NCBI GenBank assembly: GCA_977016875.1
Contig: CDRNST010000060.1
Coordinates: 6,200,001 to 6,264,000, forward strand
Reading direction: 5' to 3'
Source of the DNA: Pavona decussata
Lineage: Eukaryota
Length of the DNA stretch: 64,000 nucleotides
A program made the position numbers and the translations under genes. Each line of letters opens with the position of its first letter. Position 1 is the stretch's first letter. The notes beneath the pieces are model-generated. The model saw only the letters and a list, made by a program, of their open reading frames with translations. It was not told the origin of the DNA and made no database searches. This document shows positions 42,445 through 63,519 of this stretch, piece by piece.

Positions 42445-42544
42445 ATGAGAATTATCGTAGGGGCAGTGATTTGGTGCATTGTCGTCAGGGAATGTAGGCA
42501 GAAAGAGCTTGTCGACGCTCGCTCTTCCTTGGCAAAGATAACAG
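42445..42544 (+). CDS. PKD1-like exon 1, putative signal peptide (MRIIVGAVIWCIVVRECRQKELVDARSSLAKIT)
   Basis: AAAATG start context, short hydrophobic core, donor ACAG|gttaaa in phase 1 matching the exon 2 acceptor. An upstream acceptor at 42405 leaves room for an additional 5' exon. Confidence 0.65.
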
Positions 42545-45500
42545 GTTAAAAAAAACTATCGTGCTAAATTAGTCTTCAGAGGCTTAATAGTGACTTCCTT
42601 ATCATTTTTGATTGTTTGTTATTTACAGCTAATTGTCGCAGACCTCTCGGAATGGCGAGTGGAGAAATCCGGAACGAGCAGATCACAGTCTCTTCGGCTT
42701 ATGACAACGACTTCTCCACGTATGGATCGCACCGGGCAAGGCTGAATTTAACCACTTGGCCACCAGGTTTTCGAGCTGATCCGAATCAGGTCGGTGGATG
42801 GATAAAAGTGGAGTTGGGAAAGAAGATGGTCATAACGGCAATTGCTACGCAGGGATATGGCGATGATAGTATCGAAGAGTGGGTCTCGCAGTATATGATC
42901 ATGTATTCCAACGGGGCCGATTACCAATATTTCAAAGATCTGAAAGGTGATCTTAAGGTAGGTTGAACAAAGCCAAGTAGATAACGCAGCTTTCTTGTTA
43001 AAAAGACATGAACTGAATACAGTGTACTACACTGTCGGGGTGAAATGCTTCCGCCACTCAATTTACTATTCCAATCTAGATTATTAAATATTTCTTGAAC
43101 CGCGGTACCTTTGTCAGTTGAATTGTTATTGCTGTGTCGGCTGGTGATACACCGTATACTGATTTCAGCTTGTTTATCCACTGCTTTGCCGACTATGTTA
43201 TACGTCTGAAAGGCTATATTAATTTAATGCCTTGTTGCTCGTGTTTATGATATATTTTCTCCTGCATACCAACAGCTAATTTAGTCCTAAAGATAATGCC
43301 CTTTAAATATCTGGTTGGCGAAATCCGCTTCGTCGTAAATCAAATTATAGCACATTTGTTCCGCCTGAAATTAAAGGATTTGCATAAGATTTTCGTTTTA
43401 TTATGAAATCATTCAATCTAACAACCGTTGGTACTTCCATCTACGAACAGGACAACATTGTACCTTCCGTTCCACCAGATAATTGTGGCGATTAAAAATT
43501 TTAGTTTGAAATCTGAGTCAAGATGGTACTATTTTTGATTAGAAACTTTAAAACACGTTGAACTTAATGCTGTTTTACATCCTTACACAATGGAAATCCA
43601 ACAGCCACACATCGACGTTAATATTTAATGTACCTCAAAGGGATATCCCGCTTTTTATTCCGCTTCAGAAGCAAATGTTAGAAAAAGACCACATGTAATT
43701 ACTTTCAAATCCAAAAGGTATAGTAAAACGCCTTTTGACGCGTTTATTAAAAGCGCGCCTTTTTTGTGTCCTAGGACTTCAATAGAGTAACACAGTGAAT
43801 GTTGTGTGGCAAAGAAATTTTGCCTTGTTTCGTCTAGGTTGTTTGGATGTGGTTTAATTGCTTTTACCTCAAATTGATTTACTTCCAGGCGTTTCAACGT
43901 CAACAATATGCAAATGTATTTTTCGCATTGAAAAGAGTTGAAATATCTCGACAAACTTCAAATTTACCGCCAATCTTGTTCTTGAGATTTCAAATTGAGA
44001 TAAACCCTTGGTGAATCTTAAATTCCAGTGATGCCGTTTTTGAAGCTGAAATTAGCTTTTCTGGAGCATTTGGTTTTGTGGAAACTTATGTTTTGAGTTT
44101 TAAGATAACCACAATAAAGGTAAAAAAGGTATTTCTGTCTGTGATGCAGGACGCAAATCAACTGGCTTATCTCGTGCCGTGACTTGACGGCGAACTTTTT
44201 ACACGCTTGAATTTCTCACTAAATCATTTCAACTAATAGCTTTAGATAAAGTTAAATAATAATTTTGTTTTACCTAAATTAATTGAATTTTAGCAAAATC
44301 ACCGATATCCAGTTAACATAAACAGAACAACGGTTTGGTAAGTGTTTACATGTCGAACATTTACCACCAAACAGGGCAATTTACCGCACACACATTAAGA
44401 CTTTGTCAATTGTGGTTTTTTCTGCAAGCAGATTATTCTTGTTATATTGTTATCTTTACCAGGCTCTTCAAGGTTAATCTCGGTTTACTCAGCAAATAAT
44501 TTTTGGAAAAACGACACTAAAAAGTAAATGTCAATTATCCTTACAAATAGTATTTTTCACTCGCCATTTTAAAAGACGTGAAAATATGTTTTCTTCCATT
44601 TTGTTGATGTGAAAGACTTATTCAGAACAACTTGTTAAAATCCTTTTACGTTAGACTGAAAGGTGGTATGGGTATATGTAAATCAGGCTAAGGAGCAAAT
44701 AAATGAACATTTTTACAGCTTTCTCATTTAATCGCCATTCTTAAAAACAGGCCATCACATTTCTTTAAATTTGAGTTTGGCAAGTTTAGGCTCATAGAAA
44801 TCTTCCTTTGCTACGTAAAACCCTACATTAAACCCTTTTTTCTGCATTTACAGTTTTTTACGGGGAACAAAGATGGCAGTTCTATTCATCGAAATGAGGT
44901 CCCTTTGCCCACAGTCGCATCTTCGATTATGATCATGGAAACATTTAGGCATAACAACTTCGCACTCAGGATGGAATTATTCGGTTGTGAACCAGGTGGG
45001 TATATTTAGGGGAGGCCTGGATTTTGTTATGCGATTGATTGGAGAAGAACATCGTAAAGTACTTTATCTTGTTGAAGTTTTTAGTTCGCTTTCATGGTCT
45101 ATTTTGTAGTATACGTTTTACTGTATACGAGTTACTCTTTAAGGAGGTAACAAAAGTTGCGAAGAAGGGACTATAAAAACAGGGTCATTTTTGTACATAT
45201 TTCTATATATTTCTATATGCCACTCAGTAAATTTCGAGTCAAATCAATGAATTTTTTTTCAGTTTGTTTTAGTCTTATGAGCAATCAAGTATAATGAAAG
45301 AAAGTGTATTATCAGGGTTTTTATCTTCAAAGGAACGTTCATTCATGGTAAGTGGAAATTGGATTCTGTGGAATGAAAATTAGAGAATTTTGTTTATCCA
45401 GACGACTGGCAATACTAAAAAAAAACAACAACAATATTTCGCTCCAAGCTGGCACCACAAGAAAAAGTACAAACACGTCTATCTCCTCAGCCGTCGACAT

Positions 45501-46464
45501 CACTTTCATATTGTTTTTGTTTAGGTAAGTTTTGCTAAGGATTTTTTCTTGGGCAATACTTGACATTGAACTTTGCATGTGTAGGTCCTTGTTTTCCTAA
45601 ATTGTGGAATATGGGTTTACCGCGATTTTTTAACAGGGCTTTTAAGCCAGAAAATTCCGTATAAATCATGAAATAATGACATTTGATATGGATTTGCAGA
45701 ATAAAGGAAACTGGACGTCAACCAAAAGGGTTTCTGTGATATCTTAACTATCTTAAATCGATTTATGACATCGAGGTGAAACCATTAGATACATTCTTCC
45801 AAAAATGTGGGAAATCTTTTTAAAAAGGTTTCCTTTTCCCTCCACTGTTGTAATTTCTTTTCAGTTTGATACACTATTAACCTCATTACCCCCACAAGTT
45901 GCAATCCTTAATTAGCTTTATTCAGAGTAGCCTTGCAATGACTGGTACGATAGCATGACTAATTCACCACATGATACTGATGCTAATGTAAACCGCAGCG
46001 ACCACTTTATTTTCTCATTGTATTTTCCTGTATGCATAGCCACCGTTAATTATTTCTTTATACATGTATTCAAATCAAAAGGACAACGTTGCGTTTAAAT
46101 TTACAAACCATATTTGGGATGGGCAACATCTGTGGTCAGTTACGACACTTAATTAAATGCGAATAACATGTACATTTCGCACTGTTTTTACATAAGGTTC
46201 TGTGCCCAGCTGCTAAGAATGATTCAAATTTTCGTGTTTTTTTAATATTAGAGAGATTTAGCATGGCGTTTACGGCAAACGGCAAACGCCAGGCTGAAAT
46301 TTTCTCTTTGATGAAAAACAATGAAGCTTTTTCGGTTGAAGCTTATCTCCACCCAGTCGCCGACAGCTATCGAGCAAGTACGAAAAAGAGAGAAGTGAGT
46401 ACGAGGAACACAAGTTTATGCATTTTAGAACAAACAGCGGCTTGACGTTTCCCGTTTGGTGTTA

Positions 46465-46495
<31 letters not shown>

Positions 46496-49400
46496 ACTTC
46501 TTTGTTGCTCCTTGGCAATTTTGATTGCAATCCCAAGTATCTTAGTCTGTAACTCCGTTTTCATCTTTCCGCAGCTCCTACCGTCTCCTTTTGTGTGCGT
46601 TTTTTTTCGTTCTCTGTTTTATGATGATATAGTAGTGTAATAAGTTCTGTCTGTCAGTAGGGTAATATTATCAGTAAGTAATGCATTGAGGCAGGATAAG
46701 TGGCGTATGTAATTACAGCGTAGTATGTAACGCATGCAAATTAAATGAAGCAATGTATGGCAAATGCTTTGGTTAGTTGCAGCCATTAAAACAGTAAAAT
46801 GTTCCTTGCATTCAAAGTAAATGACGTCATAATTGGCGGAAAATATGATAACATTTTTTAACATTATAACATTTTGTTAAGATCAGACATGAATGATGGA
46901 TGCTCTTTTTTCCAACTCCCAGCTGTCTTAGCTGAGAAAAGACGTTCCAAAACAAAACGTGTTGATTATGATTGGTGAATTTATGGGCTTCTTTACAAGG
47001 AGGTAGGGTAATCGTAGTTACCCTACCTCCTAGTTTGTTAGGAAAAGAACCCGTTTCAAAATTCCGACCCAACAGGTATAGTGACTTCGTTTTAGAGCTG
47101 ACCAACGAAACATTTTGTTAAAGTGCGGGAAACAAATGACCTTCACAAACCTTTTTCCCATCGGGTGCAACTAGATTATTCCCTAGTAAACAGGAAAGGC
47201 AAAAGAATTCTTTTGACTGTAAGTGGGGTGGCAGGGAGACTATTTCAGTAGCAATTGGAAAAATCGCGCTATAATGAAGAATCTTGTAGTGCAATGTGAA
47301 AAATGAAAGCTGTAAGGTGTATGTTCATTGGGTGCTGTTTTAAAACGATAATTCATGTAACTTTATCATAAAATAGATAAATATTTTATGAAACGACTGG
47401 TAGAGATTGATTGTAGTTTGCCTTAACAATCATGGTTTTGTTTTGTTTGGTAGGTTATTATTTTGTGGTCTGGCTCATGTTAGCAGAATATACTTGCACA
47501 ACAACTTATCTGGATAGCGAGAGCCCGGAGTACCAGGATGTGGCTGAAGACGTCACCTATGTGGTAAGAGCGTGTGAAATGATGGGAAGGGCGAGGAAAT
47601 TCGGGAAATATAAGGAGGACGCAGGCCTAGATTTGAAGTGTATGTGAGCAAATTGTCATGAATGTTAATTCCTATTTTACGTAGTATATGAGAATTTACA
47701 TAAACATTAAGCAAATTACTTGACTTTTTATTGGCCTTCCAATACTTTCGCTCGCCACCCATTGGTCAAATGGCGTCACGTGATGCAATTTGTCCCAACT
47801 AAAACGAAGACAAATTATGTGATATTCCTCAAACTTTTGTTATCTCCAGGTTTTCAGCTAAAGTCGTTTCAAGGCCATGAAACACAATTAAAACGTTCAA
47901 GATGGGAGGGCGTTTTGCGACTGGTGCAGACAAGAGGGTCTATTTACTACGTAGTTGTGGAAAGTGATCGCGGAAATTAAAACAGAAAAAAAATAGCATC
48001 CAGTCAACATCCTACGTGCGATTCAAGGATAAACGGATGGCAAACACAATGACCTTTATTTGGCTTTAAAAGTATCTTTGACGGATTTTTATCCTTGGGC
48101 ATGGTCTGTTCAATAGCCTCGTTGTTGTGTGACTGTTTTCCTCTGGGAACAGGCCATTTCCTCGGAGAAATATCGTTGTACTGTTAAGTTGATACCAAAC
48201 TGGAGGATAGTATTTTTTGCGTTACATCTCCGCTCGCGCAAAAATTAAAGATCGTTGCTTCTATATTGTTTTATTTCAATTTCATTTCAGAGTACATTTG
48301 CTCTGGAAACCACCCCTGGATTCCTATCAGCAAAGCTGCTACGGTTCATGTATGTTCGTTTATTAGTAATCCAGTCATTTAGCTTTAATGTTGCCCCAAT
48401 CCCTCCAAAGTCTCTCTCCCCTTCAAGGGGATTCAATATAAATTCGCGGTTACAGGCTCAATGAGTGACAACGTTAGTTATACCAACAGAAATTTAGAGT
48501 TTCCCTTGCAGACGATCTCTTTGACTTGTCATCATCTCCTTCATAAGGTTCACGTACCGAAAGACTGTCCGAGTAAGAAATTTAAAACTCGATAACACGA
48601 GATTTTTCATCTATATACAATCGCTATATGCTGCTAATGGCTCACAAATTCTCGTGAACTATTTTATTGTCAAACAGTTGTTTTCTAGTGGGCTCCAATT
48701 GGTCCATTTCGTACGTTGTTTTCCGATTTGGCTAATTGCTGATTCTCGAATTGGCCTAAGTCATTTCTTACAAATCAATATATAGTTCCCTGCCATTTCG
48801 GTTCACAAATTGGGTATTTCGCTTGTAAGCATTTTCTTAAGCAGATGCAATCAAAGACGACCATTAAAGCACGATGACCTGCAGTGATACCAAACGATGC
48901 GTCCAAAGGCAATAGGAGCTGTTTTGCACAATTTGGAGAGTATGGAAAGGGGGCTTGCAGTGAGGGTAGAGGGTGGATGATTCTATTTTTTAGCCCAATT
49001 TGTTTCAGAGCCCACTACTCTAATTTCTCGGTCAAAACCTCAGCGCCAGAAAAAGTTTTTGTTCCATTCGCTGTCCAGTATTTCTTACCCCTTTCCCTTA
49101 GAATAAGTGAACACGACTCTATTTTTGCCCCTTCAAAATCCTTAATCCACGTACGTCTTTAGTCCCCAGACGCAAGGAGCTGAAGCCAAATTGTCTGCAG
49201 AAGTTAAGATTTACTGCATTGAAGCGAGTGTTCACGACATCACTGCTGCTCTCACAAGTTACGTACAAAGTAAAGTGGGTTTGTTTGACCAACACTTCAT
49301 CAAACTGCAATACTCTTGTAAGTATTGAGGCTTTGCAGCCATCCAACGGATGAGATTAATGCTTCAAAAGACCCTTGCCTGTGCCTCAAAAATAAGTGAA

Positions 49401-50832
49401 GCGTACAGCTTTGAGTCACGATCAACAATATTCACACTATGTTTATTATGCTGTACAAGGCTGTTCTAAATTTTTGAGTCTGTGGATGAAATCTTAAAGT
49501 GTGACTGTGCAAATGAAAGCTACTGAGTGGTACTTTCCTGTAGAGCTTTTTGATATCCTCTACAAGGTTGTTCAAAACTTTTGAGTCTGTGGATAAAATC
49601 CTGAAGTGTGACCATTCAAATGATAGCTACTAAGCAATACTTTGCTGTATGGTGCTGTAAAGCAAGACCTACGAGTGCCTTGTTGTTATGTTGTTATTCA
49701 AGTCTGTGGATGAAATTCTGTGTGGCCATAATTCCAAACACTATCGAGTAGTATTTTTCTGTTGTGTGAATGAAAGTTGCAATTCTAAATTGCAATTGTA
49801 AACATATATCGAAATATAAACCTACTAAAGTAGTTGTTTTCTATGTATTTTTTATTCCCAAAAAGTTAAATCAGTTTTCCTTTTTTACAGTGGATCATCA
49901 ATGTCGCCCTCCTGATGTGCACATTCACCTCAACAAAACGTACACCAACGCTACAAAGATAACAACAGTTGATATGTTTGTTGTCGTTGGAGAGGTCACA
50001 CCCCGTTGCAACACTTCCAAGTCAATGCTGCTCACCTGGGAAAGTAATGAAGTAGAAGATTTAAACGGGGCGTTCACAATGAGTCAGACCCTAGCTGTTG
50101 CTTCCCTCAACCTCACGATTAAACCAAAGACGCTCTCTGTTGGTTTGTATTTCATACGACTGATCGCGGAGATGACAAAAGAGGAGGGGGCCATCGGTTA
50201 CGATTATGGCTTTCTCCAGGTTGTGTTACCTGATCTTGTTGCTACGATACGTGGTGTTCACAAGGTGGTGAAGGGAACAGGAAATGTTGTACTAGATGCG
50301 ACAGACTCTTATGACCCTCACGATCCCGCCGCAAAGGACCAAGGGATGGTCTTTACATGGCTGTGCCGAAGAGAAGACGAAGATTTCTCGAACTTACAGG
50401 CACTTCCGATCGACACTCCGCTCGGAAGGGAGAAGGTTCTTGGAGGATGCTTTGGATATGGTGTCGGAAGGATGAACACAACGGAGCCTATTCTGGAGAT
50501 TGAAATAAACAGGATGGTCTCCAAAAACACGTATGTGTTTAAGCTGATTGTTGAGAAAGAAAACCAAACTTCTGCTGCTAATCATACACTGAAAGTGGAC
50601 TCGTCCATTGCTTTTTCTATAAGGTGAGACAAGTGAGAAAAAATTTTCTACGTTTGATAGCCATAAGCAAGTATTTATGTAAATATGATAGGATTTAGAA
50701 CGTTACTTGTCTGTGGTAACCAATATCAATTAATGAACTAACTTCTGGTCACTTCTGTTTGGTTGTTATGAAAGGAGGTCAAGTTTTCTATTATTTTGGT
50801 CTAAACTGGGTATAATCATAATCATAATCATA

Positions 50833-50864
<32 letters not shown>

Positions 50865-53800: not shown

Positions 53801-56800
53801 ATTCGGATCATGGTGCATCAAAGGAACCGACGAATCCACTCTGGACAAGGATTCGTCGATTCCTTTGATGCGCCATGATCCGAGTGATCTGAGATCACAA
53901 ATCCGTTTCTGGATTCTCCCAAAAAAACGCACCCTGAACGTCCATTTTTTTAAGAATTCACAAAACAGAGTTTTAACTTTGCACTACATTTTTACATCAA
54001 GATAGGTTTGCATTGTTGAATGTTGTTTTGCTTTTCACAAATACCATTAAAATATCTGTTAATGCTTATCGGCTTACTTGTTTCCGGACATTGTGAAACT
54101 TGGAAACAAAGCTGTCATTGATAGGGCGAGGACATGTTTTCTTTATGGAGAGGAGACTGTACTGGGTGAATTTTTATTCCTTCTCCGGGTAAAACGAGCA
54201 CGCGACTTCTGCAAGAGAGGGGCCACTTCCCTTTGTATGTTGCTCACTCTCAATGTTGCGACTAATACAATTTTTCTCTTATGTAATAACAATCAAATGA
54301 ATGTCCGCGATCGGTTTGTTTTGGGTTTTTAGCATAGTCCGATTGGAGAAATAGAATAAAAATAAATAAGGCAATTTCTGTAACGTTACTGATAAAAGTA
54401 AAAAAAAAAAGCAATAAAATAAATAAAACAAGATAACTGCAAATCTTCTTCTCTCGTAAACACGTAAAATCTAGACTGCATTGTTCACAAGCACGTTTTC
54501 TTAGCACTCGCTTTAGCTTAAGTTTACCATTGTTTCAGTCATTAAAGGAACACCGATACATCGACATGGTCGGCAATTATCGTATGTCATCGACATCAAG
54601 ATTTACCTCCACAGCTTCCCAAATATCCCTCCTGTGAAGTTCATACAAATTACTCTACATGCGGCCACAATCCAGCTGACAACTTTCATGGGTTTTTCTC
54701 CTGATATTCTCATTCTTCTTCCCCACACAGCTGGTTTTTTGTCAAATTTCATCACTCTTCCCAGTGACACTCTGGTTGCAATCTAATTTCTTTTCTTTTC
54801 CACGGTTGACAATAAAAGTGGGCTGCTTGTGTTTTCCCAGTTCGTCTGGTTTCCAATTATTTCACGTCAATTTGTTGTAAGCGTTGAGGTTGAATCTTGA
54901 CCTTCAATCATATGTTCGAACTGATTAACCACTGTCACTAATTCTTTAAGTAAGTTCTCGCTATTACCCCAATTCATTTGTGCTTAATAATACACACATG
55001 TTCACTGATTGTTCCCAAACTAGCTAATAGCCTTTCCATCGAACAAACGCACATTTTAACTTCAGTTTTTTTACTTAATGTATTAACTGAACCTACTAAT
55101 ATCTAGTCTTTGCTTATATTAATTAATAACTAATTAAACAACCTTAGTTGTTGTGAACTTCAGTTGCTATCTTGTCCTCGACACCAAGCGCCAGTCGGTC
55201 TCCTGGTGAACTCCTCCGTCACTGGTCCTCTTGGCAAGTGATTTTTATAAACTAGCTATCTGCCTTTCCATCTAACAAACGCACATTTTAACTTCTGTTT
55301 TTTTACTAATGTATTAACTGAACCTACTTATATCTACTCTTTACTTATATTAATTAATAACTAATGAAACAACCTTAGCTGTTGTAAACCCACCATTTGC
55401 TATCTTGTCCTCGACACCAAGCGCCAGTCGGTCTCCTGGTGAACTCCTCCGTCACTGGTCCTCTTGGCAAGTGATTTTTATAAACTAGCTATCAGCCTTT
55501 CCATCTAACAAACGCACATTTAAACTTCTGTTTTTTTTTTACTAATGTATTAACTGAGCCTACTAACATCTACTCTTTGCTTATATTGTAAACTGGTCTT
55601 CTTGGCAAGTGATTTTTGCAAAGTTTTGTGCTGGATTGTTACGTTTCGCCGGTGATTTCGTAGTTTGTTGCTGGGTGTATTTTCCCCAACTAAGGACGCT
55701 CGAGGCGTGCAAACTAAAGTGGTAAACGAATTGCAAGGAGATGAGACTCAAAGAAAGCAAAGTAAACTAATTAAAGAAACAAGAAAACAATCAACATTAA
55801 TAGGCTCGTCTATTGGCTCTGATACTGGAACGTTTTTAAACAAGGTGTAAAGCTTTAAAGGGCTGTAAAACCCTAATACGGCCAAAAGATGACATACACA
55901 AAGACGCACAACAACAATTACAACAACAGCAACAACAACAAATTAATTCCTGTAGGCAAAAGTAGAAATAAAACTAAGTAAAATTAAAATCGATTTTAAC
56001 TTTAGCTTAATCGAACATATTTATCATGTGGTACTGCACTACTGCGCACGTGTTACACGGATAGCCACGAAACGTCACGTGATGGCACGAATCACCACTC
56101 AGCACGGATCGAGCACTGTCACGATCAGTCACGAGTAATTATCGATCATTTTCGACCATGTTGTGCATGCTTTTGACTCACAGATTGATGTGGTTAGAAA
56201 TGATTTGCGCTCAAAGTTTAAGGTCACCAAGTCGACGGTCCTTAACGTAAGTACATATCACGACGAGGCACATTCTCACACATGCGCTACCTTTAATTTA
56301 TTTTCCTTCATATATTTCTTTATTTGTCCATCTTTTGGTTGTACTTATTTGTCATGTTGTGATAATAGTCATGACGTGATTGAGATGTGAATTAATAATA
56401 TGTTTCGTTAAAATAAATAGTGTCAACGTATTTTTGGGGTGTGTGCTATTTGTACTTTTTGACCCTTAATTCTTGCCACCATTAAAACCAATTGCGAGCC
56501 ATTGTACAGGTTTTTATTTTGTGGCATTAAATCGCATATGTACTGTGTTTTTTTTATTTCATTTGTTTCACCCATACGACAAACAACAAATTGCATTGGC
56601 AACAACGCCAACAACAGGAAGAACGGGAACAACAACAACATAGAACAGCAATGGAAACGAAGACATGTAAATAACATTAAGATTTCGTTGTAGGCTACAT
56701 TTCTTATTTTGTATCGGTTTTAAATCCTTCTGTGTTTGTCAATGTAAACGTGTGGTTTTCTTTGTTATCCATACTTCGGTCCATACTTGTCGTGTGTGCT

Positions 56801-59800
56801 GGACAGGTCCCTTTTCAATAATAATTCAATATGGTCGAAATGACACAAACGGGCTGCATTCTGCATCCACATCAAAGGACTGCAAAAATATTGTCAAAAT
56901 ATTTAAAAATATATTACGTTAAAACACTTTATACCAAAGTGTACTTAAGTTGAATGCTAGCTGAATTTGTTTAACTGAAGCAATTTGAATGTGTTTAAAA
57001 ATTTAAAAACCCGTCAGTCAGGTGAGTTTTGTCTTTTAAAAAATCTCAATTCAGGCACCGTTTACCATAAAAGTGAATTCATTTTGTTGAGTTATTAGTG
57101 ACGATAGAATGTGAAATTGTTGCTATCCTTTATTCCCAAGAGGCGTCTGACGTTTCATTCCAGTTTTCATTTTAAACTACAACTTTTTAGTGACTATTGA
57201 AGAACGTAACTAAACCCGGGCGTAAACGTTTCCTTAAGAACATTTACACCGGCATCTAAGAGCCATGTGTTTAAAATAACTTGTAAAATACGGGAAAAGG
57301 TTTCTCATTGTTGTGCTCAGCTGGTTCAAGATGAATTCATGACGTGCGCGCAAGGGAGGACGAGTAACCTGCCACTTGAGATGAGTTCCGAAGTGCGATC
57401 AGGATCAGCGAGGGTGTCCTGGATGTTTGTTAATTTAATTTTGAGACTGTGACGGGCTGACGCTGTATTCTGTTTTTGTTTGCAGCTGAAAGACACGATC
57501 ATTAACCAGATGGCCAACGTCAAAGTGACCAGCATTGAACAAGTTTCACAAATGGCAGCAGTGGTCGCTTTAGCAACGGAACAAGGGGACGAAATATCTC
57601 AAAATTCGCAAGTAAGAATTGTTGATTAAATTATAAAGACAATCAGTTAGTCCGGCTGTCAATCAGTCAGTCATTCAGTCATTAGTCAGTTGGTCAATCC
57701 GGCACATATTCAGTCAATCATTTATTAGGTCAGTCAGTCAGTCAGTCAGTCAGTCAGTTAGTCAACCGTCTCTCAATTAATAAGCGCGTCATTCATTTCA
57801 ATTATCCAGTCAGATGGATTTTTTAACCCGTGTTATTCGTGTATCCAGCTGACAATTTCGTTTTTTCTTGTTACGCAGGAAAACGCAGTAAATCTCCTAG
57901 AAGGTACTGCTGACTTTGTGTCATCTCAAATGAAGTCCGGCGCTGCCGATCCCGAAGTTTTACAAGGCGTCGGCGCCAGTTTACTACATGGTATCTCAAA
58001 CGTCATAACTGCAGCTTCAACTGGAGCTAAAGCGGAAGACAAGGAGGAGTCTGGGAACGAAGACGATGAGGAGGAAGCGGAGAAGGAGAAGGAAAAATCC
58101 AAAGGAAAAGTACTGTTATTTGTGAATACACTTTTCACTCTTTGGCAATATCATTTGAGCGTTGATATCATTAGGTTACTCCTTCGTTGCAGCATGTAAC
58201 AGCTACCTTAAAGTGGAAATTGTCCAGATACAGTTTTATATTACAAATTCCAGGACAGGGCTTTTCATTCATTGCGACCATAAACTTTTTCGAGAATCAA
58301 CATCCTGAAAGTTTTAGTCTGCAATCAAACTCAACTTTTGCTATCTTTTGGTTGGCGCAAATTTGTTCTTTAACGTGCATTAGGAAACACTCGTTTTTAA
58401 ATCTGTGGCTTGAGCCGACAGCCGGATTAAACGTTCTTGTTACTTGAAGGGGAAGTTTCAAGGGATCTTGTGTCATTTCAAAAGTTCAGAAGGCAAAACG
58501 GTTTTGCCATTAGGCCATCCCGAAAAAAATGTTTCCTTTCCCATCGCCCGACCGACCCATTTTTTCGAAAAGTAAAAAAAAAAAAATAAAAAAATAAATA
58601 AAAAAAATTCCAGATTCACTAGTCAAAGAAGCAAATACTTTAATTTACGAGCACATTATCTTGTTTTTTTTTTAACAACAATTGGTATGATGTGATGTCC
58701 TTGTCTTTAATTTACATCGACACTACGAATAACGAACGAAAACACCACGTTTTCGAGTTGACTTTGTAACCAGGCTTTCTTACTTAGCAGCCCGGCCTTC
58801 TCTGGAACCCAGACCCCTTCAAGTGTTCATTCTTCTTCTTTTTTTTGCCCGAGCGACCGACCCACCATCACAAGAGACGGGGCGATAGGAAGCGAAACAT
58901 TTTATTGGGATAGCCTTAACAGAAATCTAAAAATAATATTCCACTTGTTTCTATGGCCATAGATGGACTGAATCGTTAATGTATTTTTGGCCGCTGTAAA
59001 GAGATTCCAGAGCTGGCGTTTTGAGTGTTGTCCCGTGGTAAGAAAGAATCGGAATGGTTTGGAAAGGAAAGGCTTTCCTAACATTTTTTAAGTTCTGCCT
59101 TTTTCATGTCCAAAATGCGCTAAAACAGATCATGATTTCTTCCCTTCAGGAATTCGGTTGATTTCTTTCCCTTGGTGTTCTAGATTGACTCTGTATTATT
59201 ACTCCATTTTCACTTCCAAAGGTTACAATCCCCGGGACATGTCGGTCCCCCTTAAGGTCCATACTCGTTATTTCCGAATCTGGGTCTTTCAATTAAGTTT
59301 TATTCACTTGTCACTTTCAGAGCAAAAATGTAGCTGAAAAGACTCTCAAGTTAATGGACAAGGTAGGATCAAGTCTTCTGGGTACGAAAACTGTCGGTGA
59401 AAAGCCAAGCGTGTTTAAAACCAAGTCCCTAGCCATGATGCTGGATAGACAGGTGCCATCAAAGATTGGCAACAAAAAGCTGAGCGACGGGGAGGGGGAC
59501 GGGGGCGTCGCGTTACCTTCAGCTGATACCCTATTTGGTGACGAGGCTGGCAATCTTCCTTCAGTTGATTCTCAGGTAAGAGCCTAGGCACAGTAAGCCC
59601 CTGTATTGTCTCACTATGATGCCTAAGGGAAGCGTCCTTCTCTGTAGCTGTTTATTGACTTGTCAAACTTTGGGGTTTTATCTGTTGATTCAAAAAAGTC
59701 GTAAACGTAATGGTTAGTAACTCTTAGTATGTTTATTGGCAATTAAACCATTTAAAACGGGTTTAGCGTTGTCTCATTTATGACTTTTACCCAATGAAGA

Positions 59801-62800
59801 CCCTCCTTCTCTTTACTCTTTGTAGATGCTCAAGTTTAAGGACAACCCTTACACTTGGGACGCATCGTCCAAAGGCATCAAGTCTTCAGTCATCGACTTT
59901 TCTTTGAAAACCGCAAACGGGAGTGCCATTGACGTTTCAGGACTTTCGAAACCAGTGGAACTGTTCTTGCCTCAGAAGAAGGAAAGCGAAGAGAAAGCCA
60001 ACACGACGACACCTGTGTTTTTTGCTAAACCCAGCGACGGATCAAACAACATAAGGTTGGTATTTTCACAAAAGATGATAATTTCTTTACGGAATACATT
60101 TGCGCTGCGTTTTTCAGGGGGATCTATAACTAAATGTTTTTAACTATGTACCTGTGAGCACTTTACTCATTTGAGTTATCGGGCCCCTAGTTACCGTTAA
60201 CAAGGGAACTGTCTTAAAAAAGAGAAGTATGTTTGAAAATTTTGTTGTTATTAGGTACCATCAAGTGGTGGTTCCGTCAAAAAGCGCATTGATTTTTGTT
60301 GAAGTCAAACCGGAAGAGGGCAAATCTCTGGAGGTGTACGTCAGCTACAAAACACGCCCTACGGTGGATAAGCACAGCTTTACTGCTATCATCCCTGACA
60401 TCGACTACTGCAACGATACTGAAACCGGCTTGAATTGCAGCTCGGAAGCTTATGTGATTGCCGTAAGCAGCGCTGTTACTGGGCACATCGGTGTGCACTA
60501 TATTGGTATCAGGTATCCTGAACCCGAAAACGACGATCCCACACCCCCGGAGGGGGAGGGGGAGATAGACGCGCGACGCGTGAGACGAGGGTGCGAGAGT
60601 CACGGGGGCAGACAGAAGCGGGCTTGCATCGGTGTCAAAGATCCCCCAACCACCCCTCCCCCAACGCCTAAGATGGTTATTCCGCAGTATAACGAGAGTA
60701 CTGACGTGAATTATACATTGTCAACCACTGTGACAAAGTGTTTGTATTGGTCTGAGAAGAAGCAAGCTTGGACAGACGATGGCTGTAAGGTAATCAATTT
60801 TTGTCTGAAAGTAAATAAGATGAATATTATATATTTGAATTGCAGATGAAAGACCATCGCAGTGGTGAACACTATTTGAGCAGTTGCGAAAAGAAAGCCT
60901 GAAAAAAGGAGGATACCTCTCTTTCGAGTTAGGAACCGAGTTGTGAACCTCGGTTCCTCACTCGGTTCGTAACTCGATTGCTAACTCCATTGATAGTTTA
61001 TCTCATGCAGTTGTAGTTGGGGAAATTATGTCACTTTTGTTGACGCTCTGTTAATAGAAAGCAGAAGACATGATTCTCTTGAAGCAATAAAGATAAATAA
61101 AAATCATCAGAAGAGAAGAAACGTCAGTATAGATGGGGAAATAGTATCATCATGACACTTTTCTCGACTCGCGCGTTCTGTTAAAGTAGAATGTTTTGTT
61201 GTCAGTAAACAGTAATATTATATCAGCCTTCTCATCGTATGAACTACCACAAACAGCCAAGAAAACAACAATAACAACAACACAAAGAAACAAAAACAAA
61301 ATACTGCCCTGACTTGTTTCACTATGCATTTCTCCAGGTTGGACCAAAGACTGTAGCCGGCAGTCTTCATTGCCTCTGCACCCATCTGTCCGCATTTGGT
61401 GGAGATTTCTTTGTCGCACCAAACCCTATTGATTTCGACAAGGTCTGGGCCGCGTTTGGCAACCTGGCCGAGTCTGGGAACTTTGTGGTGTTGGCCACTG
61501 TTTGTTCCATATTTGGACTGTACATAATTGGCTTGGTGTTTGCTAGGAAGGCAGACAAGAAGGACGAAATGAAGGTAGGTCCTAAGTCGCAGCTATAAAG
61601 TTCTAACTAGAAAATAAATCGTTTAACTCTTTTAAACCCAGTAGTGATCAGCATCTTATTTCTCCTTACAATATCACTACTTGATTAAACTTACAGGTAA
61701 TGAGAATAAAGGAAATGATCATCACATACTGTTCAATAATTTTGGTGTCAAATATTTCTTTCAACATTTAGCTATATCGAGCCGTGTAAACCGGGATAAG
61801 TAACACTAAAAGAAAGTGCTCTCTTCATTTCCTTTGACCTGAATGGTCACAGTAGCAATTCATTAACAAATTAAAAGTAAGAATCATCTTATACAGCATA
61901 ATAAACAGCAGCACAGCAAAAGACTACTGATAAACCGGTTTCGTTTAAGTTAGAGAGTGATTCTTTTCTGTTTCGAGCTCTTTTGCTTTTGTGTTAATTA
62001 TTCCCTTAGGCAAGGCACTTGATCACGCCATAGTCATCTCTCGATATTCATATCAATAATTGGGTAAAATAAATTATCAGGGAAACTGACATACTACTGA
62101 GGTTTAGGGAAGAACTAACTACAGTCGGGTTGAAACAAGAGAAAATAATTTTCTCTCGGCTGAAAGCAATGCTTTCTGTTTACCTTATATGATATGGAAA
62201 TCAGAAGTAAGCGTGCATATTGCGTCGTAAAAATTGACTTGTTTTGTTTTCAGGTCGTGGCTAATGTGTACCTGTCCGAAAACACCGAAGAAGGCTACGT
62301 GTATGAAATCTCTATTCAGACTGGAATGTGGAAAGGTTACGGAACAACAGCTAACATCGGATTGATTATCTACGGCGAGCAAGGCGTGACTCCGACCCTA
62401 CCCCTGTCAGATCCGGAACTAAATAAGATATTCTTTGCTCGTGGGAGTATCAACAACTTCACACTGTCTGTGCCTGAATCGCTGGGCGACTTGGTTAAAA
62501 TAAAAATTTGGCACGATAACAGTGGGAAGAGTCCAGCTTGGTTCTTTTCACAGGTGCAGATTGTAGATGTGCAAAGTGGAGAGAAATGGCATTTTCTTGG
62601 TAACCGATGGCTTGCTGTTGAAAAAGAAAATGGACAGATAGAAGTAGAAATAAAGGCTGCTGCTAAAAAAGAACTCGCGGGATTTAAAAACCTGTTTTAC
62701 TCCAGGACCGCGCGGAGTCTGGGTGATGGTCATTTGTGGCTATCAGTGTTCACCAGGCCCCCGCATAACACATTCACTCGCTGTCAGCGTTTAACGTGTT

Positions 62801-63519
62801 GTTTGTCAATTCTGTTCGCCACTCTGATAACGAACGCTATGTTTTATCAATTTAACAAAGCACCAGAAGACACTTTCCAGATAGGACCGATCAAATTAAG
62901 CTGGAGACAAATTAAAATCGGAATCCAAAGCAGCATCATCGCTATTCCGGTAAATGTCTTGGTGGTGACAATCTTTAAGAACATTAAGCACCCGCTTCCC
63001 GAAGAAGCGCGATTAGCCAACCAGAAAGTACCCGGATGCCTCCCACATTTTTTTGTGTACGTAGGCTGGATACTGTGTATCCTCACTTCATTGGCAGCCG
63101 CCACTTTCACTGTCTTTTACAGCATGATGTGGGGCGCGGAGACATCAAACCAGTGGCTCACTTCAATCATGGTGTCATTCTTTCAAGACGTCATCGTCAC
63201 ACAACCCATCAAAGTTGTTGTGATTGCTTCAATGCTGTCACTTCTGATCAAAAAGCCCCCAGAGCAGGAGTCAGTGGTCGGATCGTCTGTGTCGAGAAGT
63301 GGCGGGAAAGACAGTGATGTGGCGCCACCTGCGGGAGAGGCGCTGAGAAAAGCGCGCGAATTCCAGACGAAGGTGCTAGAGATGTTCAGGACTATCATGG
63401 AGATGGCTTTTTTCTTTATTTTTATCGCTTTACTTATGGTGGTGTGCTATGGAAATAGAAAGTCTACCAGGTTTACGCTGACTGCAGAGCTAGAAAATCT
63501 GTTTGGCGGATTTGATAAG
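42445..63519 (+). CDS. PKD1L2-like: Polycystin-1 family (PKD1-like / REJ-domain) receptor gene, 18 coding exons in window, 3'-incomplete. join(42445..42544,42629..42957,44854..44995,47454..47563,48291..48349,49163..49317,49891..50623,50957..51168,51479..51725,52916..53078,53309..53491,57486..57611,57879..58109,59321..59575,59826..60055,60255..60789,61338..61574,62254..63519). Orthology to a specific vertebrate paralog is not established.
   Basis: Manual splicing gives one open frame of 1771 codons with every intron phase matching (GT-AG, one GC-AG). Family hallmarks: REJ motifs (VVLDATDSYDP, FTWLCRR, GGCSVTPEMGYAVTTEFTISCQGWYDEDLPLKYEF, LPLGNP), GPS (CLYWSEKKQAWTDDGCKV...HCLCTHLSAFGG), PLAT (YEISIQTG...GTTANI...IKIWHDNSGKSPAWF...RWLAVE), then HLWLSVFTRPPHNTFTRCQRLTCC and multiple TM helices. 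Confidence 0.95.
42629..42957 (+). CDS. PKD1-like exon 2, F5/8 type C (discoidin) domain N-part
   Basis: CRRPLGMASGEIRNEQITVSS...ARLN...WIKVELGKKMVITAIATQG...EWVSQYMIMYS; acceptor tttacag|, donor AAG|gtaggt. Confidence 0.93.
44854..44995 (+). CDS. PKD1-like exon 3, F5/8 type C domain C-part
   Basis: FFTGNKDGSSIHRNEV...ALRMELFGCEP, the classic discoidin end. Not in the ORF track; phase 0 in, phase 1 out. Confidence 0.92.
46250..46491. mobile_element. MITE in intron 3 (AG..CT ends, ATT TSD; PIF/Harbinger-related by inference)
   Basis: agagagatttagcatggcgtttacggc / gccgtaaacgcgaagctaaatctctct; ATT at 46247-46249 and 46492-46494. Alternative reading is a TA TSD. Confidence 0.85.
47454..47563 (+). 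CDS. PKD1-like exon 4, SEA-like domain start
   Basis: YYFVVWLMLAEYTCTTTYLDSESPEYQDVAEDVTYV; acceptor ttggtag|, donor GTG|gtaaga; phases 1/0. Confidence 0.85.
48291..48349 (+). CDS. PKD1-like exon 5, SEA-like
   Basis: STFALETTPGFLSAKLLRF; strong acceptor ttcatttcag|, donor AT|gtatgt; phases 0/2. Confidence 0.8.
49163..49317 (+). CDS. PKD1-like exon 6, SEA-like C-part
   Basis: PQTQGAEAKLSAEVKIYCIEASVHDITAALTSYVQSKVGLFDQHFIKLQYS; acceptor tctttag|, donor |gtaagt; phases 2/1 bridge exons 5 and 7 exactly. Confidence 0.82.
49436..49770 (+). repeat. ~107-bp tandem repeat, ~3 degenerate units, intron 6
   Basis: agtctgtggat recurs at ~49477, ~49584 and ~49701, with aagtgtgac..aaatga.agctact. Confidence 0.85.
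49891..50623 (+). CDS. PKD1-like exon 7, REJ domain N-part
   Basis: CRPPDVHI...LTIKPKTLSVGLY...VVLDATDSYDPHD...FTWLCRR...GGCFGYG; acceptor ttttacag|, donor AG|gtgaga. Confidence 0.93.
50812..50876. repeat. (ATAATC)n grading into (ATC)n microsatellite
   Basis: Direct reading. Confidence 0.9.
50957..51168 (+). CDS. PKD1-like exon 8, REJ (ends at a GC donor)
   Basis: CKINCGDKV...CIGLSC...YNWTLY...PTLVFKG; only AAG|gcaggt keeps frame with exon 9. Confidence 0.85.
51479..51725 (+). CDS. PKD1-like exon 9, REJ
   Basis: KTNSPP...GGCSVTPEMGYAVTTEFTISCQGWYDEDLPLKYEF; donor AG|gtaagt. Confidence 0.93.
51852..52061. mobile_element. PIF/Harbinger-type MITE, 210 bp, TAA TSD, intron 9
   Basis: gggcgctttccattagtcagaactggc / gccagttctgacaaatggaatgcaccc; TAA at 51849-51851 and 52062-52064. 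Confidence 0.85.
52430..52554 (+). repeat. (TTATC)17 tail preceded by AATAAA; probable 3' stub of a retroposon
   Basis: gaaaaccccctctggggagtgttcAATAAAgta then TTATC x17 (52466-52550). Confidence 0.8.
52916..53078 (+). CDS. PKD1-like exon 10, REJ C-part
   Basis: RLPLGNPTHGYIIGLEIQIIDSLGA; phases 2/0. Confidence 0.92.
53309..53491 (+). CDS. PKD1-like exon 11, helical post-REJ/GAIN region
   Basis: VEAMSDKDVTGTLMNMASG...LLQSGDVGKAAQMAYAVLSMV; phases 0/0. Confidence 0.88.
53747..53934. mobile_element. Fold-back MITE, near-perfect 188-bp palindrome, intron 11
   Basis: Arms of ~88 bp (gggttcgttttttgggagaatcca...aaggaaccgacgaatcc / ggattcgtcgattcctt...tggattctcccaaaaaaacgcaccc) with an 11-nt loop. 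Confidence 0.9.
55017..55618. repeat. ~233-bp tandem repeat, two full units plus an internally deleted third
   Basis: aaactagcta starts at 55017, 55249 and 55482; gtcctcgacaccaagcgccagtcggtctcctggtgaactcc in units 1 and 2; the third jumps to actggtc.tcttggcaagtgattttt. Confidence 0.92.
57486..57611 (+). CDS. PKD1-like exon 12
   Basis: LKDTIINQMANVKVTSIEQVSQMAAVVALATEQGDEISQNSQ; acceptor tttgcag|, donor |gtaaga. Not in the ORF track. Confidence 0.9.
57642..57765. repeat. Degenerate (CAGT)n microsatellite
   Basis: gtcagtcagtcagtcagtcagtcagtcagttagtc with degenerate flanks. Confidence 0.85.
57879..58109 (+). CDS. PKD1-like exon 13, ends in an acidic/charged linker
   Basis: ENAVNLLEG...VGASLLHGISNVITAAS...EDKEESGNEDDEEEAEKEKEKSKGK; phases 0/0. 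Confidence 0.88.
58513..58915. mobile_element. MITE, 403 bp, GG..CC ends, TTA TSD (Zator- or Harbinger-type), intron 13
   Basis: ggccatcccgaaaaaaatgtttcctttcccatcgccc / gggcgataggaagcgaaacattttattgggatagcc; TTA at 58510-58512 and 58916-58918. Confidence 0.85.
59321..59575 (+). CDS. PKD1-like exon 14, GAIN
   Basis: TLKLMDKVGSSLLGTKTVGEKPSVFKTKSL...VALPS...VDSQ; donor CAG|gtaaga. Confidence 0.92.
59826..60055 (+). CDS. PKD1-like exon 15, GAIN
   Basis: FKDNPYTWD...SSVIDFSLK...IDVSGLSKPVELFLP; phases 0/2. Confidence 0.92.
60255..60789 (+). CDS. PKD1-like exon 16, GAIN with basic-motif loop and first half of GPS
   Basis: VYVSYKTRPT...HYIGI...RRVRR...RQKR...CLYWSEKKQAWTDDGCK; donor AAG|gtaatc. 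Confidence 0.94.
60818..60906 (+). repeat. Head fragment of the tRNA-like palindromic repeat family
   Basis: tatatatttgaattgcagatgaaagaccatcgcagt...gcagttgcgaaaagaaagcctga, whose end is the reverse complement of 559-581. Confidence 0.65.
61338..61574 (+). CDS. PKD1-like exon 17, GPS cleavage site (HL|S), stalk and TM1
   Basis: HCLCTHLSAFGGDFFVAPNPIDF...VVLATVCSIFGLYIIGLVFARKADKKD. Confidence 0.95.
61622..61725. repeat. Fragment of a TTAACCC-type MITE
   Basis: ttaactcttttaaacccagtagtgatcagcatcttatttctccttacaatatca...atgagaataaaggaaatgatca; family recognised from memory. Confidence 0.5.
62254..63519 (+). CDS. PKD1-like exon 18, PLAT/LH2 domain plus TM2-TM6
   Basis: 422 codons with PLAT motifs and hydrophobic helices; acceptor ttttcag|, donor AAG|gtaata. 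Channel-domain exons are expected beyond the window. Confidence 0.95.

Follow-up and report, generated by a model that had tools for sequence, protein, structure and literature searches.

The locus that begins at position 42445 of the window (the whole stretch of 64,000 nucleotides of Pavona decussata DNA that was analysed) raises the question of what kind of polycystin carries a discoidin domain and a SEA-like module at its outer tip, and whether such a protein comes from one intact gene. Proteins of the polycystin-1 family are regarded as sensors, and knowledge of their ectodomains is drawn from vertebrates and sea urchins; to our knowledge their ligands are almost unknown. Taking all of the evidence jointly, it is probable that the locus (hereafter gene A) is one intact stony-coral gene for a discoidin-tipped receptor-channel subunit of the polycystin-1 family, ~2508 residues long and with 11 transmembrane (TM) segments, which would belong to a subfamily older than the split between stony corals and sea anemones.

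The junctions, read directly, give a model of 20 exons on the + strand, with 2508 codons that are all open and 11 TM-like segments. All 19 acceptors are AG, and the donors comprise 18 GT and one GC. The 18 exons inside the window sum to 5313 nt (1771 codons, up to 63519), and exons 19 and 20 add 737 codons past its end; the 1771-residue model of the initial annotation is therefore reproduced in length up to 63519, but is incomplete, having missed the last 737 residues (i.e. the channel-like half). The domain order proposed there (F5/8C, SEA-like, REJ, GAIN/GPS, TM1, PLAT, TM2-6) was recovered exon by exon, the SEA-like part through sub-threshold matches in paralogs, and the introns after 42544, 44995 and 49317, which it had put in phase 1, indeed follow phase-1 donors. 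The start codon is the ATG at 42445. Exon 1 (42445-42544) consists of this ATG and a hydrophobic, signal-peptide-like stretch that runs up to a phase-1 GT donor at 42545; P0271 and P0273, orthologous ORFs of other samples, begin at that Met and have this stretch in common with it as far as the donor. Positions 1-40000 of the window hold no stretch resembling any exon of gene A, and Rfam gave no match over 42000-64000.

Gene A carries a bona fide F5/8C (discoidin) domain at its tip. Exon 2 (42629-42957, with a phase-0 donor) begins with a conserved Cys and encodes the first two thirds of the domain; on its own it matches Pfam PF00754 (F5_F8_type_C) with an E-value of 4.8e-11 and 43.3 bits against a cut-off of 28.2. 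The last third is found in exon 3 (44854-44995, with the phase-1 donor directly after it), which alone covers profile positions 86-127 (E 0.32), completes the domain with a closing Cys near its end, and is 43-60% identical across all tip-bearing paralogs and the coral assembly L010. Against PDB, the best matches of the discoidin exon include a factor VIII C domain (1.5e-22) and neuropilin b1 (4e-18). A whole-library HMMER search with the same exon gave no long single-discoidin polycystin among its best 150 matches, and the matches listed consisted only of multi-discoidin proteins and single-exon ORF fragments.

The tip is followed by a REJ module and a membrane core. REJ starts in exon 7 (49891-50623, with a phase-1 acceptor) and continues through exons 8 (50957-51168), 9 (51479-51725), 10 (52916-53078) and 11 (53309-53491, with homologs in the paralogs), after which comes a 4-kb intron. 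Pfam PF02010 matches exons 7 (E 8.2e-33), 9 (5.4e-16, profile positions 279-351), 10 (2e-6, positions 353-414) and 11 (0.036, positions 416-452), together covering positions 6-452 in order, and orthologous ORFs of exon 7 are 60-91% identical in many coral samples. The stalk between REJ and GAIN is made up of exon 12 (57486-57611, 36-50% identical to paralogs B, C, H and I) and exon 13 (57879-58109), of which the tail is acidic and of low complexity, and which has homologs in the paralogs with the donor position kept. Exon 14 (59321-59575, 52-54% identical to paralogs B, I and J) lies in the stalk/GAIN region. The GAIN region continues in exon 15 (59826-60055), conserved in all paralogs and in Nematostella, and in exon 16 (60255-60789), conserved in all paralogs, at the end of which the first half of the GPS motif matches Pfam (E 0.017-0.067, with profile positions 2-21 covered at 0.067). 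Exon 17 (61338-61574, 53-80% identical in the paralogs) encodes the second half of GPS, and its translation reads C-x-C-x-H-L-S directly upstream of the TM1-like segment (61473-61547); judged from this translation, the HL|S site at the predicted GPS is intact.

Exon 18 (62254-63519) holds a PLAT domain (Pfam PF01477, E 4.8e-19) and TM2-TM6, and finds polycystin-1 in PDB with an E-value of 1.8e-51. The TM-like segments of gene A are arranged as 1 + 5 + 5, of which the five in exon 18 form the second group. Beyond the window, exons 19 (64581-64752 in window-equivalent coordinates) and 20 (65005-67046, likewise) both match PF20519 (Polycystin_dom), exon 20 also matches PF08016 (PKD_channel), and Ion_trans was matched downstream in Pfam as well; the S5, pore-helix and S6 stretches of the last exon are well conserved relative to PKD2L1. 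Among the features of the polycystin-1 (PKD1/REJ) family, gene A has REJ, GPS before TM1, PLAT in the first cytoplasmic loop, and eleven TM segments, TM6 being followed by a polycystin/TOP domain and TM7-11 being TRPP-like. No Pfam match to LRR, WSC, C-type lectin, SUEL or PKD repeat was found on any exon scanned (exons 1, 4 and 5 being covered only inside longer open frames or not at all), which agrees with the absence of these modules and of a PKD-repeat array described initially, and only ~298 residues lie ahead of REJ, filled by the F5/8C domain and the SEA-like module. Since a PKD1 ortholog has LRR, WSC, C-type lectin and a PKD-repeat array in its ectodomain, none of which is present on the exons scanned, gene A is of the PKD1L/REJ type and not of the PKD1 ortholog type.

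The module between F5/8C and REJ (~108 residues, split over three exons) is probably a non-cleaving SEA domain. It starts in exon 4 (47454-47563, phase-1 acceptor and phase-0 donor) with a predicted first strand and helix, continues in the short exon 5 (48291-48349, phase-2 donor) with a conserved P-G-F-L-S motif, and has its second half in exon 6 (49163-49317), between a phase-2 acceptor and a phase-1 GTAAGT donor, both phases being kept in the paralogs and L010. Exon 5 is 72% identical to L010:15862-15915, and its motif and phase-2 donor are also found in paralogs C, D, E and L010 (in paralogs I and J the motif only). No paralog, other coral or Nematostella copy was found with the module undivided in a single exon. 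Of all Pfam families, only SEA was matched by two or more of the 11 exon-4 homologs, and the three matches (paralogs B, F and I, at 13-16.5 bits against a cut-off of 26.4, E 0.01-0.09) are in register on profile positions 2-35 of 106, i.e. the N-terminus of the domain. The nearest named atlas clusters of gene A's own exon 4 carry PF01390 as well (scores 0.86 and 0.84), and the size of the module and the alternating hydrophobic pattern across it (alignments A1 for exon 4 and A2 for exon 6) would fit the beta-alpha-beta-beta-alpha-beta fold of the SEA type. It could also be that exons 4-6 encode an unrelated linker domain specific to this family. No exon of gene A or of its paralogs reaches the Pfam SEA cut-off (PF01390), the exons of gene A, in which the module was scanned in pieces, have no Pfam SEA match at all, and a whole-genome Pfam SEA scan found none in its cluster; exon-level profiles found no SEA chain among PDB sequences, and the atlas gave no neighbours for exon 6. 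Given the in-register matches, the atlas neighbours of exon 4 and the fitting size and hydrophobic pattern, however, such a linker appears rather unlikely, and a SEA domain is preferred. The autoproteolysis site that many, though not all, SEA domains have (G-S-[VI]-V-V or G|S-V-V-V) is absent from the equivalent loop in the copies in which the junction was read; this loop spans the exon 5/6 junction, and its sequence is F-S-P (F-I-P in gene A), in most cases with a Q after it.

The same tip is carried by at least nine paralogs in the Pavona decussata genome. Paralogs B, C, D, E, F, G, H and J and the L010 assembly all run, on one strand, from F5/8C and the SEA-like module through REJ to the channel, and so does Nematostella DS469513.1, within 12 kb. 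The phase-1 boundary between SEA and REJ is kept in every copy read, and so are the other phase-1 boundaries wherever junctions were read. Between paralogs A and B, identity is ~24-33% in the SEA-like module and REJ; it rises to ~50% for the discoidin domain and lies at 50-80% for the membrane core. Six further ORF sets, from coral assemblies, contain 1:1 counterparts of the A clade. By these comparisons, gene A is one conserved orthogroup in a tandemly expanded, discoidin-tipped subfamily, and the layout is real, belonging to an old family common to corals and sea anemones rather than being a one-off invention. With the tip present in the paralogs, L010 and Nematostella, and the SEA/REJ boundary kept, the shuffling event (if there was one) predates the coral/sea-anemone split. 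The term 'lineage-specific' in the initial annotation consequently does not hold for this gene or species, and would have to be rescaled to the coral/sea-anemone level. The literature searched contained no description of a discoidin/SEA-tipped polycystin, and none is present among SpREJ1-10, the human members, Nematostella polycystin 1 and the Acropora REJ protein. The phase 1-1 boundaries of both N-terminal modules are symmetric, as was first stated, which is compatible with exon shuffling but no proof of it, because this is the commonest class for extracellular modules.

In a tandem family of this size, a copy could be decaying or silent. The family has at least 45 members, contig C35 holds partial dead copies of the 5' part of gene A, four coral metatranscriptome runs gave no sign of expression over 44800-50700, and one junction of gene A has a non-canonical donor, around a 310-nt segment that is missing from the paralogs. 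At this junction, between exons 8 and 9, the homologous frame is preserved only if the donor is the GC at 51169. Its position is fixed by comparison with the homologous paralogs I, J, B, H and F, in which exons 8 and 9 are fused as one exon; the GT-AG alternatives were rejected, as these would add or delete residues without support from the paralogs. The intron (51169-51478, 310 nt) is single-copy in the genome, which rules out a transposon origin, and GC-AG introns are a known minor class. Against decay, furthermore, stand the 2508 out of 2508 codons that are open over 20 exons with every other splice site canonical, the 60-90% protein identity of orthologous exons in other coral assemblies, and a dN relative to L010 of 0.21-0.33 on the tip exons, far below the saturated synonymous sites. 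A pseudogene is therefore very unlikely, and gene A is, as far as its sequence tells, intact.

Whether exons 1-20 form one gene bears on the same transcript data, in which the contigs show no exon-exon joint over 44800-50700, and hence no RNA junction between exons 6 and 7. These RNA contigs are short and ~96% identical; they fall on exons and introns without distinction, and they break at 48979 and 49849, neither of which is a splice site. Protein word searches with the last exon, the P0007 discoidin exon and a REJ exon had only single-exon genomic ORFs among their matches, and P0156, considered as a transcript, turned out to be genomic. Two adjacent genes could be imagined, in which exons 1-6 encode a small secreted discoidin-SEA protein and a tipless polycystin starts at exon 7 or later: retention of the intron after 49317 leads to a stop three codons on, an in-frame ATG is present at 49770, upstream of exon 7, and the first NCBI annotation of the Nematostella locus consists of three predicted proteins, with the F5/8C part as a separate protein of 161 residues. 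However, the donor of exon 6 and the acceptor of exon 7 are both strong, both phase 1, and kept in the paralogs checked, L010 and Nematostella. Moreover, the short SEA/REJ intron of Nematostella, at just 89 nt, speaks against two genes, and in another coral the gap is ~0.2 kb and is read through in frame (P0308); a terminator and a promoter would not fit into gaps of this size. Orthologous ORFs begin at the exon and do not share the ATG at 49770, and a polycystin that started at exon 7 would be without a signal peptide, the conserved start and hydrophobic leader being found in exon 1 only. Two genes are thus the least probable of the explanations considered, and exons 1-20, on these comparative grounds, probably form one gene, as part of the joint explanation given at the outset.

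If gene A is one intact receptor-channel gene, its discoidin tip may bind an extracellular ligand, such as a glycan, a lipid head group or a matrix protein. The uncleaved SEA-like module and REJ would then serve as a stalk, transmitting movement induced by ligand or force to the self-cleaved GAIN domain, the movement of which could gate a heteromeric cation channel, formed by the PKD2-like C-terminal half of gene A together with polycystin-2-type partners. The discoidin-tipped subfamily would already have been present before stony corals and sea anemones diverged, so that module swapping at the polycystin tip was apparently under way by that time. A wider reading, which we put forward tentatively and hold to be less probable than not, is that discoidin/SEA-tipped polycystins are anthozoan-wide, tandemly diversified, ligand- or force-gated TRPP receptor-channels, each paralog being tuned to a different cue by its fast-evolving SEA-like module and REJ; candidate cues might be egg-coat or sperm ligands (as for sea-urchin REJ), surface glycans and lipids of microbes or symbionts, or matrix. 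What makes the subfamily of interest is that a conserved cnidarian group joins a well-understood binding module, the discoidin domain, to a PKD2-like pore-bearing scaffold. It is also a tractable system, since screens for binding to glycans, lipids or matrix could be run on the tip expressed by itself, and the compact Nematostella copy is suited to knock-out.

Compared with known systems, gene A shares the REJ-GPS-TM1-PLAT-TM core with polycystin-1 proper, i.e. human PKD1, the hair-cell polycystin 1 of Nematostella (OK338071) and the REJ skeletal-matrix protein of Acropora digitifera. Polycystin-1 proper carries both WSC and PKD repeats, and its vertebrate forms add LRR, C-type lectin and LDL-A modules (PMC8846589; PMC4890752); gene A is without all of these and is a different member of the family. 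It is closer to human PKD1L2, PKD1L3 and PKDREJ and to suREJ3/SpREJ3-4, with which it shares REJ, GPS before TM1, a cytoplasmic PLAT, 11 TM segments, the polycystin/TOP domain and, towards the C-terminus, a six-TM half similar to polycystin-2 channels. In PDB its last exon is indeed much closer to PKD2L1/PKD2 (4e-42) and PKD1L3 (7.5e-30) than to PC1 (1e-13). At their N-termini, PKD1L-type polycystins and sea-urchin REJ proteins have modules of the C-type lectin, SUEL, EGF, PKD-repeat or WSC kind (PMC1934368). None of these members has been reported with a discoidin domain or SEA, whereas gene A has one F5/8C domain and a SEA-like module, and no PKD repeats. A similar design is found outside the family: adhesion GPCRs, of which ADGRG6 and ADGRF5 are examples, combine SEA and GAIN in one ectodomain, and follow the same logic of a tip for ligand binding, a SEA module and, beside the membrane, a GAIN domain that cleaves itself. 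Their core is that of a seven-TM GPCR and their SEA is often cleaved, whereas gene A has an 11-TM polycystin core and no site of the G-S-V-V-V type. Finally, the F5/8C domain with its flanking Cys pair (in gene A, one Cys opens exon 2 and the other lies close to where exon 3 ends) is common to the C domains of coagulation factors V and VIII, neuropilin b1/b2, retinoschisin, lactadherin and DDR1/2, the best solved relatives of the gene A domain having E-values of 1e-22 to 1e-7 in PDB; none of these proteins is known to carry it on a polycystin/TRPP scaffold, whereas gene A does.

Gene A, the plus-strand polycystin-1-like gene that starts at position 42445, was modelled by reading junctions in the sequence, with GT/AG pairs picked by frame and by homology to its paralogs in the same genome. 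The 18 exons inside the window total 5313 nt, i.e. exactly the 1771 codons of the initial annotation, but the gene does not end at 63519, as had been assumed there: two further plus-strand exons lie in DNA fetched past the window, at window-equivalent positions 64581-64752 (exon 19) and 65005-67046 (exon 20, the last). With these two included, gene A runs to 20 exons and 2508 codons and encodes 11 TM-like segments in a 1 + 5 + 5 layout. Every acceptor is AG, and every donor but that of exon 8 is GT (18 in total). The introns after 42544, 44995 and 49317, which had been called phase 1, all have phase-1 donors, while the intron within the discoidin domain is phase 0, that after exon 4 phase 0 and that after exon 5 phase 2.

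Plus-strand stop-to-stop open frames were each scanned singly against Pfam, where F5/8C exceeded the cut-off (E 4.8e-11), REJ matched on four exons that cover the profile in order, and GPS (first half) and PLAT were also matched. Searches against solved-structure sequences agree with the Pfam scans, the discoidin exon finding factor VIII C domains (1.5e-22) as well as neuropilin b1, and the PLAT-TM exon polycystin-1 (1.8e-51). The GPS HL|S site is intact. LRR, WSC, C-type lectin, SUEL and PKD-repeat families, previously reported absent, gave no Pfam match on any gene A exon scanned. Exons 19-20 carry Polycystin_dom, PKD_channel and Ion_trans (Pfam). Among solved structures the last exon is far nearer to PKD2L1/PKD2 (4e-42) and PKD1L3 (7.5e-30) than to polycystin-1 (only 1e-13), which puts the protein in the PKD1L/REJ type, where the C-terminal half presumably lines the pore. 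Compared with PKD2L1 it keeps S5, pore helix and S6 well, with I-L-G-G-E in place of I-L-G-D in the filter region, and the best named relatives of the last exon are proteins of Stylophora pistillata (80% identity) and Nematostella vectensis (62%).

Whether the discoidin and SEA-like tip (exons 2-6) is part of the same gene as the polycystin core was addressed by comparison. In four coral metatranscriptome runs the contigs were short, ~96% identical and without splice joints, covering introns and exons alike, and protein collections returned single-exon genomic ORFs only. Polycystin-type last exons number at least 45 in the genome, and many of the close ones have exon-2-like discoidin exons 15-27 kb 5' on the same strand. 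Nine loci, neighbouring or related, were compared for exon order, and in paralogs B, C, D, E, F, G, H and J it runs exons 2, 3, 4, (5), 6, 7 to last exon. The order is also kept in another coral on a 1.4-Mb contig (L010), with 51-74% identity on the tip exons, where dN is 0.21-0.33 and synonymous sites are saturated. In Nematostella (DS469513.1), F5/8C, REJ, GAIN, PLAT and channel exons lie on one strand within 12 kb, a second copy starting about 6.7 kb downstream of the first. The phase-1 borders of the SEA-like module recur in all paralogs whose junctions were read, and both the F5/8C donor and the REJ acceptor were read directly as phase 1 in L010 and Nematostella. The intron between the last SEA-like and first REJ exons is 89 nt in Nematostella, and in another coral short enough for in-frame read-through (protein ORF P0308). 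A separate, tipless gene starting at exon 7 would leave its polycystin without a leader, whereas the exon 1 Met and hydrophobic leader are kept in orthologous ORFs. The comparative evidence is thus strong that tip and core belong to one gene, as judged from genomic sequence. In a last-exon tree, paralogs A, B, C, H and J each cluster with counterparts from other coral assemblies, the placement of Nematostella being unresolved. In the first NCBI annotation of Nematostella (DS469513.1:1130520-1152197) this compact ortholog is broken up into three separate 'predicted proteins', F5/8C (161 aa), GPS+PLAT (315 aa) and channel (442 aa), with the REJ exons uncalled.

Both families are large in this genome. 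Polycystin tandem clusters occur on contigs C60 (6.17-6.50 Mb, about 11 genes), C214, C6, C126 and others, and a first count gave 539 candidate F5/8C exons, some of them in long, evenly spaced arrays (C250, C232).

The roughly 108 residues of exons 4-6 probably form a SEA domain, judging by profile matches of homologs. No single exon of the three reaches the Pfam SEA cut-off, the gene A pieces being without any match; SEA is nevertheless the sole Pfam family with matches in more than one of the eleven exon-4 homologs, namely in paralogs B, F and I (E 0.01-0.09), all three aligning in the expected register to profile positions 2-35. Among named language-model clusters, the nearest to gene A exon 4 carry PF01390 (scores 0.86 and 0.84), as leads only; PDB profile searches with single exons and an atlas search with exon 6 were blank. 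The loop matching the G|S-V-V-V site of cleaving SEA domains spans the exon 5/6 junction and reads F-S/I-P, usually followed by Q, and self-cleavage is therefore not expected.

The exceptional exon 8 donor lies in the REJ region, where exons 8 and 9 are fused in paralogs B, F, H, I and J. There gene A holds a 310-nt segment (51169-51478), single-copy in the genome, missing from those five paralogs and bracketed by the 5-bp direct repeat AGGCA, and the homologous frame is regained only via a GC donor at 51169 and the AG at 51477-51478. In its behaviour it is a GC-donor intron private to gene A, perhaps one gained recently.

The window, from an assembly of 602 Mb, is 37% G+C, contains no runs of N and shows undepleted CpG. 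Contigs from runs labelled coral metagenome match it at 95-99% identity, in line with a stony coral as the source. Its first 42 kb (1-42400) show no likeness to any gene A exon on either strand and only five open frames of at least 110 codons, and look gene-poor. Introns of gene A hold (ATAATC) x 15 (intron 7, 50812-50898), (TTATC) x 18 (intron 9, 52466-52554), a 233-bp unit x 2.4 (the 4-kb intron 11, 55017-55587) and two units of a 107-bp satellite (intron 6, 49447-49649). The satellite family forms long arrays elsewhere (e.g. C248:75-86 kb, 106-bp spacing) and its contig depths, summed, amount to 16,000-48,000 in the four metatranscriptome runs. On contig C35 (G000:C35:2964303-3076000), exon 2 recurs in at least six dead copies (87-93% protein identity, 1-3 stop codons each) spaced every 23-33 kb, several with a 90-93% identical satellite copy about 3.3-3.8 kb downstream; the pattern suggests tandem amplification of a pseudogene fragment from the 5' part of gene A. 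Paralog I (G000:C60:6444001-6466000, minus strand) has SEA-like exon 4/5 matches and REJ-to-channel exons, with no discoidin exon in the 3.4 kb fetched 5' of exon 4 (ending about 1.3 kb before the neighbouring gene), and may have lost its discoidin module.

The domain order, the HL|S site, PLAT, the 11 TM-like segments and the PKD2-like pore module are directly observed. In the proposed mechanism the discoidin tip could bind a ligand or receive a pulling force, and this event would be relayed via the uncleaved SEA-like module and REJ, together acting as a stalk, to GAIN and the membrane core.

Gene A was compared with ten sea-urchin REJ proteins and five human proteins (PMC1934368), Nematostella hair-cell polycystin 1 (PMC8846589) and an Acropora REJ skeletal protein (PMC4890752), none of which carries discoidin or SEA. 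The suggestion that the tip is lineage-specific is borne out to that extent, but the order is shared by eight paralogs, another coral and Nematostella, and the tip is not peculiar to this gene or species. Since the domain layout is kept across relatives and full-text literature searches found no paper combining a discoidin/SEA tip with polycystin terms, the architecture is real, conserved and undescribed, inside a well-known family. Where those described members between them bear C-type lectin, SUEL, EGF, WSC, PKD repeats or LRR, gene A bears a discoidin and a SEA-like module.
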